A stretch of 64,000 nucleotides of DNA from Blastocystis sp. Blastoise (Eukaryota > Protista > Bigyra: Opalinata), in assembly GCA_039096225.1 (NCBI GenBank), contig JBBPEB010000022.1:41681-105680 (forward strand). The letters are read 5' to 3'. The position numbers and the translations under genes are program-made. Below, piece by piece: positions 58,151-63,300 of the stretch. Position 1 is the stretch's first letter, and the number at the start of each line of letters is the position of its first letter. The notes beneath the pieces were generated by a model that did not search any database, was not told the DNA's origin, and worked only from the letters and a program-made list of their open reading frames with translations.

Positions 58151-58218
58151 CCTTAAGACAGGAATTGAACCTGTTTTCTATCATAAATTGATTGATACTT
58201 ACCAATTTAAGCTTAAGG
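58151..58218 (-). ncRNA. Atypical tRNA-like cloverleaf, copy 3
   Basis: Minus strand reads CCTTAAG-CTT(AAATTGGT)AAG-TATCAATC(AATTTAT)GATAGAAA-ACAGG(TTCAATT)CCTGT-CTTAAGG. Confidence 0.75.
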
Positions 58219-58523
58219 ATAATATAGAAGAAAAGTAATATAAATGGGATAGTAAAATAATACGAATAATAAGTCAGTATGATGTGTAAGAATATATTTA
58301 TATATGTATAAGAGAAAAAGGATGCTAAATATAGGAGGGAAAAAATGAAAAGAGAATAAATAGAGAAAAAATATAAAGTTAATGAGATAGGGTCTTTAAT
58401 TAATGAAATTAATAAAAAAGAATTAAAATAATAATATAGATAAATGAAAAAATATAAATATAGAGATCTATAATAGTAAGGTATGCTGAAGAGAAGAGGA
58501 TTAGAGGAGAAATGGGAAAAGCA

Positions 58524-59120
58524 TGAGGAAGAAGAAGAAGAAGAAGAAGAAGATGATGATGATGATGATGATGATGAAGAAGAAGAAGAATAATGTAGAA
58601 GATGATGATGATGATGAAGAAGAAGAAAAAGAAGAATATGTAAAAGAAGAAGAAGATGAAGAAGAATATGTAGAAGAAGAAGAAGAATATGTAGAAGAAG
58701 AAGAAGAATATGTAGAAGAAGAAGAAGAAGAAGAAGAAGAAGAAGAAGAAGAAGATGAAGAAGAATATGAAGAAGATGATGAAGAAGAAGAAGATGAAGA
58801 AGAAGAAGAAGAAGAAGAATATGTAGGAGAATATGTAGAAGATGATGATGATGAAGAAGAAGAAGAAGAAGGAGAATATGTAGAAGATGATGATGAAGAA
58901 GAAGAAGAAGAAGATGATGATGATGATGATGATGATGATGATGAAGAAGAAGAATATGTAGAAGATGATGATGAAGAAGAAGAAGGAAATAATTATAACC
59001 AGAAGAAGATGGAGAATAAATAGAATAATAAGAAGATGCTTGTGAAGAAGAGATAAGGAAGAAGAAGAAGAAGAAGAAGAAGAAGATGAAGAAGATGAGA
59101 AGAAGAAGATGAAGAAGATA
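58524..59120 (+). repeat. (GAA)n/(GAT)n compound microsatellite with recurrent GAATATGTA
   Basis: Directly visible trinucleotide array. Confidence 0.9.
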
Positions 59121-60220
59121 ATATTGAGATGTATATGAAAAAAATAAGAGATAACAGAATAATATATAGAAAATGTAGAATAAAAATAATAAGATGAATA
59201 AGAAGAAGATAATGAAATGCAGATGAAGATGAAGAAAACGAAAAAGGAGATAAGAAAGAAGAATAAGAAGAAGGAAATGAATAAATACAAGAAGAAGATG
59301 AAGAATAAATAGATTAATGATAAGAAAGAACAAGAAGATTAAGGTGAGAGAGCTAAGAGGAAGAAGGTGAAGAAGAGACTAGAAAGAAGGTAAAAAATAA
59401 AAAGAAAAGTAAGATAAAGAATAGGAAGAAGATGAACAAGAAGAGAAAGAAGAATGAACAAGAAACATATATTGAGATGCAGAAAAATAAAAATAAATAT
59501 AAAGAAATAGATCGATAGATAGATAGATAGATATATAGATAGACAGAAGGAGATAGAGATGGAATAGAGAGAAAGAGAAATACAAAGATAAAAATAGATA
59601 GATAGATAGATAGATGAATAGAAAGAAAGAAGAAAAGAGAGACATAAAGAAGAAATTAGATAGAAAGAGATAGAATTCTATATAGAATGAGAGATATACA
59701 AAAGAAATCAAATGAAATAGAGAATAAGATAAAAATAGATACAAGAATAAAGATAAAAAGAGAAATAGAGGAGTAGGGAAGGTGTATAAAAAAGAAAGAA
59801 TATAAAGATAGGTAGAGAGGAATTGAGAAGGATAGAGAAGGAGGAGGAAAACAGATAGAATTGGAAGACGAAGAAAAGAAGATGAGACGAAGAAGGGAGA
59901 AAAAAGGAGCAGGAAGTGAATATCAAGAAAGATAAATTTATATAGAAAAAAATTAGAAAGAAAAATACATACAAAGAAAACGATAGGGAATGATAGAGAG
60001 AATTATAATTTGAATGACATAGAGAGAAGGAGAGACAAAGCAAGATAAAGAAGTATAATAGAAAAAACAAAGAAGAAAAAAAAGAAGAATAAAAAAAGAA
60101 AAGATAGAACAATAGTATATGAGAGAAGAAAGAGACAGAAAGAAAACGGGAAATAGGGTAGAGACATAGAAGGTAATAAAATATATAGAAGGGGAGAGGG
60201 GATTGAGATAAATAAATAAA

Positions 60221-60332
60221 TAGATAGATAGATAGATAGATAGATAGATAGATAGATAGATAGATAGATAGATAGATAGATAGATAGATAGATAGATAGA
60301 TAGATAGATAGATAGATAGATAGATAGATAGA
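60221..60332 (+). repeat. (GATA)n microsatellite
   Basis: Perfect TAGA/GATA tandem array of about 110 bp. Confidence 0.95.
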
Positions 60333-63300
60333 GATAGAAGAATACCGAAAGATATAGAGAAGGAGATAAATATTAATAAAAAGGAAAATATGGATAGAGA
60401 GGAGATAGAATCAAACAGAGAAGGAGAAGTAGATAAAAGTCGTTGAGAGAAGAGAGAAGTAGATTAAAATAAAAACAAATAGCAAGAGTTAAAAGGAAGA
60501 AGGGAAGAATATAGAATGATTTGAAGAATGAGATGTATATAGAAGTGAATAGAAGGAAATAGAGAAGGAGAAGTAGATAGAAAAGATTAAAAATAGAAGG
60601 AGATAGAAAGATAAGAGAATGATATAGATACAATAGAATGAGATAGAGAAGATAAAGTAGATAGAAATGGATAGAAATAAGAAAAATAAATAGGATAAGA
60701 GAGAAAGAGAGATAAAAGGATATAAAAGGATATAGAAGGAGAGAAAGCGGATTGAGATGTAGTAAGATGGAAGGATGTAGATGGAAATAGAGAAGTAGAT
60801 AGAAGATGATGGAGAATAAAGAGGAGATAGAAGAGGAGATAGAAGGAGAAAAAGAAGAAGAGGAAGTAAATTAAGTTAGAAGGAGATATAATAAGATAGA
60901 GAAGTAGATATACGTAGATATAAGGAAATATACGAAGATATAAGTAGATAAGAGAAAATAGAAGGAAATAGAGAATGAGATTGAGACACATAAATGAGGT
61001 AGAATGAGATAGATAAGGATAGAGAAATATGAAGAGAAATATAGGAATACAGAGAGATAGAATGATGTTGAAAGAGAAAGAAAAGGAAAGACTGAAGATT
61101 GAGACAGAAGGAGTAGCTGAGATAAAAGGAAGATAGAGAAGGAAATTGAAAGATGAAGGAAGAAGGAGAGAAGATGAAAGAAGAAGAATATAGAAGAAGA
61201 TAGAGAATGAGATAATAGGGATAGAAAGAGAAAAATAGGAAAAAAGATGGTTAGAAGAAAATAGAAAAGGAGAAAGAAGGAGAGATAGAAGGAGAAATAG
61301 AAGGATATAAAAGAGATTAAGAAAGAAGTTAGAGACAAGAAGATATAGATATATAGAAAGAAATAAAAGGATTAAATAGAAGATTAATAGGAAATAAATA
61401 GGAGACAAATAGAAGATTAAGATAGAAGAAAAGAGACAAAATAGAAGTAGATATAACAATATAGAGAATGAAAGGATAGAAATAAAAATAGAAAATAGAT
61501 AACTAGAACATAAGAATATATAATAATAGAGAGAAGGAGAGAGAGAAGAAAAAGTAGATATAAAGTGGAAAAGGAGACATAGAAGGAAATATAAAAGGAA
61601 ACAAGAAGGTAGAAAGAGACATATAAGATAAAATAGACAGGGACAGAGAGAAATAAATGGAAAAAGAATAAGGATAAAGATGGATACGAGAATAGAGAGG
61701 GAGAGAAGGAAGATTGAGATAGAATTATACAGAAAGAGGAGAGAAGGAAGATAAAGAAGGAAAATAGGGCAGTAAAAAAAAGGGAATCAGAAGGAGGAGA
61801 GAAGAAGTATGAGAAGAATAGAAAGAAGGAAGAGGAGGAAGGCAAATAATAGAAGAGAACTATATATATAATAAATAGTGATATAAATATAAATAAGAAG
61901 ATGAAGATCTGAAAAAAGCAAAGAATTATATGGAGAAGAAGAAGAAGAAGAAGAGGAAGAGGAAGAAAAGGAGGGTATACACTAATACATGTCGAGGAAA
62001 AAGAAGTATAGAATAAGGAGAAGAGGATAACAGGATAAAAGAAAAAGACATAACGAAATACAATGTAAATAGAATAGTGATTAAGAAAGAGTAATGAAAG
62101 AGTGATATAAAAGGGAAGCGAAGATAAGAGAGAGGTATAATTAAAAAAAAGAAAAATAAAGGAATTTAGATAGAAGAAAAAATAAAAGAAAAATGAAGAT
62201 CTGAGGAAGATAATGAATCAAAGGGAGAGACAAGGATATAGGCTGGAGACAAGGCATAGGAAGAAGTAATAAAGAAAGAAGATGAAGAAATAAGGAGATA
62301 AAAGTGTAGAAGGAAGAAAATGAAGAAGAGAGAAGAAGGAATCATTTTGTGTAAGAAGAAGAAATAAAGAAGAACTAGATAATAAATAAATAAATAAATA
62401 AATAAATAAATAAACATACCTAATAGAAAAAAATGAATTTGGTGATGTTGAGTCATAGGGAAAGATAACCAACAGAAACAGTAGAAAACAACCTAAATAA
62501 ATAAATAATAATAAATAAAAATATAAAAATAATGAAAATAAATAATAAAATGAATTAGAATTCTAATTCAAGAAAAAAAAAAAGAAAGTTAATAATAGAT
62601 AGAATGAATATACGATAAGTATTCTATCATATAATACTTACAGAAATATAAAAAATAAAAAGATAAGAGATAATTATAAAAATAAATAAATACATATATA
62701 CTTTGAAAATAGTTTGACATCATAGACGTTGTTGACATGGACTGAAGAGGACTCTTATAACCATGGACGAGCAGGAACCTATACATGCTAGAGAATGGGA
62801 GAATGTTAATATGGGTAAAGAATAAAAAATAGTAATATACATACAAGAGAATAGTCTGAAGTTAAAATGAACTTCTATTTTTAAAAATAAAAGCAAATAA
62901 AAATAGAATAAAAATAAAAAAAATAAGTAACAAATGAAAATATTTTCTAAGTCAATAGGCTCAATAGCGTATGGGTGTCTTCAGGTCTTAAAAGAAAAAT
63001 CATTTTTGCGGGAATATCAAGAAACTCAAAAAAAGTATATTTTCCCTCCTTTTTTCGCTGTCACTTTTTTTTAATATTTTTGACTTTTTAGTATTAAAAT
63101 CGATTCTTACAGGCATGTATAGACACTTTATACCACTTTTGAAACTAAAAATCAAATATTTAAAAATGAGTGAAAATCTTAACTAGCAAGAAAAACAATT
63201 TTGTAAGCTGAGTATGTTGTGTATAAATATGTCTAACAACAGAGATGATAAAAACGCACAACTCCTCTTGGTTTAGGACATAATTATGAATTCTCTTAAA

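Follow-up and report, generated by a model that had tools for sequence, protein, structure and literature searches.

A probable gene-like, apparently non-coding unit with a tRNA-mimic end inside a CACTA-type transposon of Blastocystis

Introduction

What kind of unit ends in a tRNA-like cloverleaf on the minus strand of contig JBBPEB010000022.1 of the protist Blastocystis sp. Blastoise? We analyzed 64,000 nucleotides (nt) of this contig (assembly GCA_039096225.1, positions 41,681 to 105,680 of the forward strand), here called the window, whose own coordinates are used throughout. At 58151-62880, short exon-like blocks lead into a multi-kilobase pyrimidine-rich tract that runs up to the cloverleaf. 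An earlier note on this DNA had likened the arrangement to MALAT1/mascRNA and read it as one of a class of long non-coding RNA (lncRNA) genes with a 3' end cut by RNase P. In vertebrates, the lncRNAs MALAT1 and NEAT1 mature through cuts by RNase P and RNase Z. In the abstract of one paper (PMC12941219), tRNA-mimic 3'-end formation on nuclear lncRNAs is described as restricted to these two. Our full-text search of the literature found nothing that connects CACTA elements or Helitrons with tRNA-like structures in such a sense. Using comparisons between genomic copies, together with profile and structure searches, we find that the unit is transposon cargo, probably a gene-like and apparently non-coding one that closes in a tRNA mimic.

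Results

The unit is the interior of a CACTA element

On other contigs, copies of the region cease to resemble one another exactly at CACTATGG, at either end, and the flanks beyond are unrelated. In the window, homology to these copies spans exactly 55054..64000 (about 8,949 bp, minus strand). The 15-nt terminal inverted repeat CACTATGGACATTTT lies at 55054..55068 on the plus strand and is present at both element ends, read inwards; its mate, read on the minus strand from 64000 to 63988, has its first two bases cut off by the contig end. The contig (C11, ending at 105680; window 63988-64000) stops two bases before the end of the terminal repeat, an assembly break at the edge of a repeat family. 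Two marks of a CACTA element were found: inverted repeats that start with CACTA and sharp ends common to the copies. Across the genome, the 15-nt repeat has 33 matches per strand, paired at a spacing of 8.5-8.8 kb. One wider pair of the same repeat, 15.5 kb across (C23:362896-378401), encloses an open frame of 721 amino acids (aa) that matches Transposase_21 (tnp2). This match to PF02992 is borderline: against a cut-off of 28.6 bits, it reaches 30.8 bits when the genome is scanned and 28.1 bits when the open reading frame (ORF) itself is searched, with a weak match to DUF4218 beside it. Given the 33 repeat pairs, the sharp common ends and the Transposase_21 frame within a pair of the same repeat, what surrounds the unit is therefore a non-autonomous CACTA (En/Spm-type) transposon with about 33 genomic copies, and the unit forms its interior. 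From its sequence, the element is predicted to be moved by Transposase_21 encoded elsewhere, the transposase score being borderline.

The putative autonomous relative at C23 contains no cloverleaf of the type found in the focal element, and the part of it that was compared, the transposase locus, has no similarity to the focal element's interior. A likely intron of the transposase gene is written in the same style as the introns of the cassettes described below (GTATAT...TTTAG). An 8.8-kb non-autonomous copy and the 15.5-kb transposase-bearing element stand only 63 bp apart in C23:353998-378401. A related Transposase_21 ORF of 718 aa occurs in three further copies (C5:500192, C19:220920 and C23:205345) that are near-identical to each other.

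Different parts of the focal element are conserved to different degrees. The pyrimidine tract (59300-62900) has more than 30 copies on many contigs at 94-98% identity, and the region around the cloverleaf (57600-58520) has copies at 92-93%, 86% and 83-84%. Upstream of the unit in its own reading direction lies a subterminal region (62881..64000, minus strand) of ordinary composition (pyrimidine 0.47-0.53), in which we presume the promoter. Beyond the cloverleaf, the element continues for 3.1 kb (55069..58150, minus strand) with balanced composition, without a long ORF and with 78-96% identity to distant subfamilies.

A splice-like leader opens into a G-poor pyrimidine tract

Read on the minus strand, the unit begins with a putative short first exon (62845..62880) that ends at a GTATGT donor (62844), a motif kept in the copies L034 and L038. 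Two exon-like blocks follow. Block 2 (62702..62778; 77 nt, GC 0.40) has an AG acceptor before its first G and a GTATAT donor after it, and block 3 (62420..62492; 73 nt, GC 0.32) is preceded by TTTAG and followed by GTATGT. A third acceptor (62376-62375) stands directly before the tract, the putative terminal exon, which occupies 58224..62374 (4,151 nt) and consists of 16% A, 26% C, 2.3% G and 55% T, or 82% pyrimidine overall. Its pyrimidine content is about 0.77-0.88 along its length and falls to 0.52 in the 200-nt bin that starts at the cloverleaf. The first-exon donor, the 77- and 73-nt blocks and the roughly 4.1-kb pyrimidine-rich stretch were all described in the earlier note, as was an end of the strand asymmetry close to the cloverleaf, and each was recovered here; the asymmetry ends exactly at the cloverleaf. 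Position 58219, which that note gave as the RNA 3' end, is the base just 5' of it.

About one third of the tract is made up of tandem arrays (GAA/TTC at 58528-59118, AGAT at 60206-60332 and ATAG at 59507-59630), and the remainder is non-periodic. Compared with more distant subfamilies, the tract is only 20-90% identical. In the 3' half of the element, the bins that hold the cloverleaf (0.90-0.96 identity) are among the best conserved between subfamilies.

These features exceed chance. A pyrimidine content above 78% is reached in only two stretches of the 64-kb window, both with a cloverleaf immediately 3' of them. Using a crude scan for three consecutive introns of the form GTAT[AG]T...T[ACT]TAG separated by GC-richer blocks of 60-100 nt, we found five occurrences in 128 kb of strand, of which two are exactly the focal unit and a sister cassette inside a Helitron. 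Exon-like blocks in these cassettes have a GC content of 0.31-0.40, against 0.09-0.12 in introns 2 and 3.

The cloverleaf is under structural selection

The focal unit closes in a 68-nt tRNA-like cloverleaf (58151..58218, minus strand; type C), which carries one A.A mismatch in its long stem. We examined sixteen distinct copies, which sort into at least five sequence types and are all built alike. The acceptor stem has 7 bp and the D stem 4 bp; where a tRNA would have its anticodon arm, there is a stem of 7 bp with a loop of 5 nt. After two unpaired nucleotides comes a 5-bp T stem with the loop TTCAATT, and the 3' strand of the acceptor follows at once. Several canonical tRNA features are present, namely a 7-bp acceptor on a 5-bp T stem, a T loop of the form TTCRANY and the GG of the D loop, and the D stem is joined without the two-base 8/9 linker of tRNA. 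Both the acceptor (alignment columns 8-14/69-75) and the T stem (52-56/64-68) are paired, and TTCAATT and the D-loop GG are invariant. The window contains three occurrences of the 15-nt T arm, with 0.03 expected, and the AT-rich, 33.3-Mb genome has 254 exact matches to it, compared with none for a reversed control pattern.

The stems covary over the five types, with 97% of cells paired and 13 of the 23 pairs changed on both sides. None of 500 shuffles came up to these values, and in slid controls about 40% of cells are paired. Because the features that depart from tRNA are common to all types, this covariation is a product of the cloverleaf family itself and does not go back to different parental tRNAs. 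With a covariance model made from the aligned copies, we found at least 150 matches in the genome, all at 82 bits or more. Copies from sister subfamilies have A-U or U-A at the pair that is mismatched in the window and cleanly adopt the cloverleaf fold (-18.9 and -19.9 kcal/mol, z -4.8 and -4.3). The cloverleaf is thus under structural selection.

Models of known RNAs do not recognize this structure. In the window and the loci examined, ARAGORN reports only a tRNA-Leu at 7617-7700 and none of the cloverleaves. Neither the Rfam tRNA model (RF00005) nor the mascRNA-menRNA model gives a match at its gathering score, or at E values up to 10 on 57900-58700. A canonical tRNA gene is ruled out by the ARAGORN and RF00005 results, the missing 8/9 linker and the 7-bp stem with its 5-nt loop. 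The tRNA-Leu(UAA) at 7617-7700 (minus strand), the sole canonical tRNA gene in the window, has a GC content of 0.57, compared with about 0.29 for the window's cloverleaf.

A host gene for a MALAT1-family lncRNA, present in single copy, would likewise show a long non-coding body with a tRNA mimic after it. Upstream of the cloverleaf (58219-58520), we found no A-rich/U-rich triple-helix element (ENE) and no Rfam family at threshold, in agreement with the earlier note, which had seen no such element. This absence, the failure of the mascRNA-menRNA and tRNA models and the residence of the unit in an element of about 33 copies with terminal inverted repeats refute both a host gene and membership in the MALAT1 family, and we regard this reading as scarcely conceivable. 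The proposed class of host lncRNA genes therefore does not hold: the earlier note had missed that the unit is CACTA cargo, and what it took for a family likeness lacks the triple helix and the model match that membership would entail.

A sister cassette in a Helitron repeats the layout

The earlier note had seen the same layout at 200-1420, and we confirmed it there as a cassette inside a Helitron (200..1387, minus strand). Its first donor is at 1387, its exon-like blocks span 1289-1206 and 1058-976, its tract starts at 754 and its cloverleaf, of type B, occupies 266-200. The blocks are each bounded by TATAG and GTATAT. They have a GC content of 0.31-0.36, compared with 0.04-0.11 in the AT-rich, (TTTA)n-type introns. 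Four subfamilies of this cassette share 53-69% identical columns in blocks and introns; at donors 2 and 3 and at acceptors 1 and 2, none of the 22 positions varies among them. Donor 1 is lost in one subfamily, and acceptor 3 is shifted in the alignment with its motif present. Indels concentrate in intron 3 (43% gap columns, compared with 4% in intron 2) and in the tract. The cloverleaf is the best-conserved block of the cassette (91% identical columns, against 29% for the tract). A third exon/intron-like triple in the same style lies at 1932-2360 on the plus strand, which is the sense strand of the Helitron, between the two Helitron cloverleaves of the window.

We weighed protein coding on both cassettes, either as a spliced hydrophobic minus-strand ORF (~88 aa in the earlier note) that continues into the tract or as an acidic plus-strand ORF. 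Minus-strand ORFs of the focal unit reach 406 aa, and an acidic ORF of 166 aa (58523..59023, plus strand) lies on the purine strand. Long frames are expected on the minus strand because stop codons need purines, of which it has few; the earlier note had for this reason treated the hydrophobic ORF as weak evidence. The tract is nevertheless split into at least eight separate frames, and Pfam gives no matches to the ORFs of the unit. The acidic ORF sits inside a GAA/GAT array, in the stretch that is least conserved between subfamilies, and is judged a repeat artefact. Indels of 4 and 1 nt in exon-like block 3 of the sister cassette also argue against coding. On the strength of the ORF fragmentation, the lack of Pfam matches, the repeat-array ORF and these indels we rejected the protein-coding reading, which is very improbable.

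The unit might also be inert filler, a pseudogene fragment with a decayed tRNA-like relic that was picked up once and has no present function. CACTA elements and Helitrons are known to capture genes, the unit exists in many recently amplified copies (93-98% identity), and the cloverleaf in the window carries a mismatch. In addition, no relatives were found outside this genome: pattern scans of metagenomes for relatives of the cloverleaf returned nothing beyond five weak matches of 13-16 bits that have no acceptor stem, one of which (L082, in a record titled human gut metagenome) is bacterial-looking with a GC content of 0.54. A relic without function would not, however, be expected to show compensatory changes in 13 of 23 pairs, which arose after a common ancestor that was already odd for a tRNA, nor a cloverleaf far better conserved than its flanks, nor invariant splice signals in the sister cassette. 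We consider inert filler quite unlikely.

Cloverleaves travel inside several kinds of repeat, with and without a tract

The cloverleaf family is carried by the CACTA element, by the Helitron (in antisense) and by other repeats. Among the copies examined, none stands in single-copy DNA, and each has a fixed place inside a larger repeat. Types D and E, which are single in the sample, also lie within multi-copy repeats. We assign the repeat that bears types A and B to the Helitrons from its 3' end: a GC-rich hairpin and CTAG at 4536-4559, followed by a host T, on the strand opposite to the cloverleaves. This end, a hairpin and then CCCTAG before the T, is common to at least 10 copies with unrelated flanks. 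A type-A cloverleaf (4275..4342, minus strand) lies about 200 nt inside the Helitron 3' terminus and has no pyrimidine tract upstream. It is copy 2 of the window (4342-4275) and stands on the same strand as copy 1, of type B (266-200), 4.1 kb away; cloverleaf pairs at a spacing of 4.1-4.4 kb recur genome-wide. A tRNA-derived short interspersed element (SINE) was rejected as the source, since similarity between types ends at the borders of the cloverleaf and the copies sit at fixed places in larger repeats.

Several further arrangements were seen among the carriers. Helitron copies with cloverleaves are dense near several contig ends (the first ~100 kb of C6, C7, C10 and C11), which suggests repeat-rich chromosome-end or centromere-like regions, and some clustered copies are head-to-head, for example in L004 at 1501/1859. 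At three loci (L015, L018 and L001), at least two tandem units of ~490 bp with 77-86% identity lie inside the Helitron, ~500-1500 nt downstream of the type-B cloverleaf. At another (L039, C24:258000-267999), a Helitron end that bears an (ATT)n array and a type-A cloverleaf has a diverged member of the CACTA family ~1.8 kb away, whose cloverleaf, of type C, is on the same strand; this could reflect a nested or adjacent insertion.

The earlier note had asked whether cloverleaves are enriched at the 3' ends of pyrimidine-skewed tracts. In our sample, types B and C follow tracts of 78-94% pyrimidine and have a composition of about 50% downstream. Type A, the commonest type with about half of the sampled cloverleaves, has no such tract upstream. 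A cloverleaf can therefore work, or at least persist, without a long RNA.

The tract-free copies fit an alternative in which the cloverleaf is an independent, tRNA-derived unit of the RNA polymerase III (Pol III) type, either a small RNA gene or a B box that binds TFIIIC and acts on chromatin, for instance as a boundary by which the transposon stays accessible. The tract would then be low-complexity DNA with no relation to it, expanded by slippage. Within the T arm, GGTTCAATTCC is close to the B-box consensus and is identical in all types found, an identity that the search pattern itself demanded. Types B and D have runs of 5-10 T within 5-10 nt downstream, and the tract differs strongly between subfamilies, both in length and in sequence, and is partly microsatellite. 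On the other hand, types A and C mostly lack a T run within 15-50 nt downstream, and the A-box region is poor and displaced by the missing 8/9 linker. The tract, moreover, ends at the first base of the cloverleaf in two unrelated transposons, with conserved splice-like leaders before each. Because this exact junction and the leaders recur in two transposons, unrelated filler fails as an account of the tract. We hold this alternative to be unlikely, though it deserves more weight than inert filler.

Public sequence data and the neighboring gene

One public run (X1, share 0.51) contains the sequence, as contigs whose RNA or DNA nature is uncertain. We compared these contigs over 60340-64000, beside the AGAT array at 60220-60332, and they cover the tract in pieces of 100-800 nt. 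One contig joins 60474 to 61188, skipping 713 nt, with 28 foreign letters between. Since the ends of the skipped segment (AC..GA) are not intron-like, we do not read the joint as a splice; more probably, one of the ~33 copies has a deletion here.

Outside the element, an H2B gene (120 aa) lies at 54467-54829 on the plus strand, 225 bp from the low end of the transposon. Its nearest named matches are from stramenopiles (64-68% identity), and metagenome proteins reach 91%. The metagenome relatives keep a divergent H2A-H2B pair; in the window, the stretch at 53543-54300 lies beside H2B.

Discussion

We favor an account in which the focal unit is transcribed by RNA polymerase II (Pol II) on the minus strand, its leader is spliced and its 3' end is cut by RNase P and RNase Z at the tRNA mimic, and we give it somewhat less than an even chance of being right. 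Transcription would start in the element's subterminal region. Pol II would be required for a long sense transcript, since Pol III terminates at T runs and would be stopped by the frequent ones in the tract. The leader would be spliced at GTAT(G/A)T...TAG signals, RNase P would cut between 58219 and 58218, and RNase Z would cut after 58151. In this way, the long RNA would gain a 3' end without a poly(A) site, and a small tRNA-like RNA would be released. RNase P and RNase Z read the acceptor/T stack and the D-loop/T-loop elbow of tRNAs, and the cloverleaf keeps these parts and has lost those for decoding. We propose cutting by these enzymes because the 12-bp acceptor/T stack and the elbow are conserved, the third arm is non-decoding and the composition switches at the first base of the cloverleaf. 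Judged on these features, MALAT1-like cutting by RNase P is plausible. The presence of the same module in a Helitron also suggests that it behaves as a portable RNA-processing cassette, carried or captured by the DNA transposons of this genome.

Several observations weigh against this account of Pol II transcription and RNase P/Z cutting. Lacking a triple helix, a cut 3' end would have no evident protection. The promoter is presumed only and the start of the first exon is putative, and copies of the focal element, at 93-98% identity, are too alike to give any power to test the conservation of its own splice sites. The window's type-C copy has a broken A.A pair, and its minimum-energy fold keeps the acceptor and T arms alone. 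The tract-free type-A cloverleaves belong on the same side of the balance. The contigs of the public run show no joint at the predicted introns, with 62431-62676 uncovered; we list this here, yet it counts neither way.

A broader proposal takes in all carriers of the family. DNA transposons of at least two, and probably at least three, superfamilies would share a 68-nt tRNA mimic that recruits host tRNA machinery, either RNase P/Z for cap- or poly(A)-independent maturation or TFIIIC on the DNA. In the CACTA element and the Helitron, this mimic would close a spliced, near-G-free pyrimidine lncRNA and form a portable counterpart of MALAT1/mascRNA of independent origin outside animals. In this full form, the proposal is possible but rather unlikely.

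We liken the unit to MALAT1/mascRNA and to organellar t-elements in its apparent working, and not as a member of the MALAT1 family. Like MALAT1/mascRNA and NEAT1/menRNA, it has a long non-coding body directly before a tRNA-shaped element with an intact acceptor/T arm and a non-decoding 'anticodon' arm. It differs from them in having no upstream triple helix and no Rfam match, in its putatively spliced leader and in its multi-copy DNA transposon setting in a protist. The t-elements of plant mitochondria and the tRNA punctuation of mitochondrial transcripts are tRNA-like structures whose sole role, at the end of a longer RNA, is to mark where RNase P/Z cut. The unit resembles these in placing a tRNA-like structure, as a proposed cutting signal, at the end of a longer RNA; they are organellar, whereas the unit is nuclear, intron-bearing and transposon-borne.

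Other known systems share single aspects of the unit. As with tRNA-derived SINEs, the sequence is related to tRNA, is scattered through the genome in many copies and has a T arm like a B box, but here there is no body or tail beyond the 68 nt, the copies are passengers of cut-and-paste and rolling-circle transposons, and the stems covary instead of decaying. Pack-CACTA elements, Pack-MULEs and capturing Helitrons likewise are non-autonomous elements with intron-containing cargo between intact termini; in our case, the cargo is apparently non-coding, has a structured RNA end, is kept in two superfamilies and is no fragment of a recognizable host protein gene. Triple-helix ENEs in the RNAs of plant and fungal transposons reportedly act as dedicated structures for 3' ends and stability. 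The likeness is that of an RNA 3'-end structure in transposon transcripts, which here would be a cloverleaf and not an ENE with an A-rich tract. Finally, lncRNAs of the PNCTR type are pyrimidine-rich and repeat-enriched. The unit has a comparable multi-kilobase, CU-rich and repeat-enriched body, which could bind pyrimidine-tract proteins; its genomic origin differs.

The family offers a natural replication of the arrangement: its copies number more than 250, five types covary, and some versions have a tract where others have none. This variety opens questions on the substrate needs of RNase P and RNase Z and on the role of a near-G-free RNA body. Should the cloverleaf instead be a Pol III/TFIIIC site, DNA transposons would be carrying their own chromatin boundary. 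If our account of the unit is true, the trick of forming a 3' end at a tRNA mimic would have evolved more than once, and mobile elements would be able to spread an RNA-processing module through a genome.

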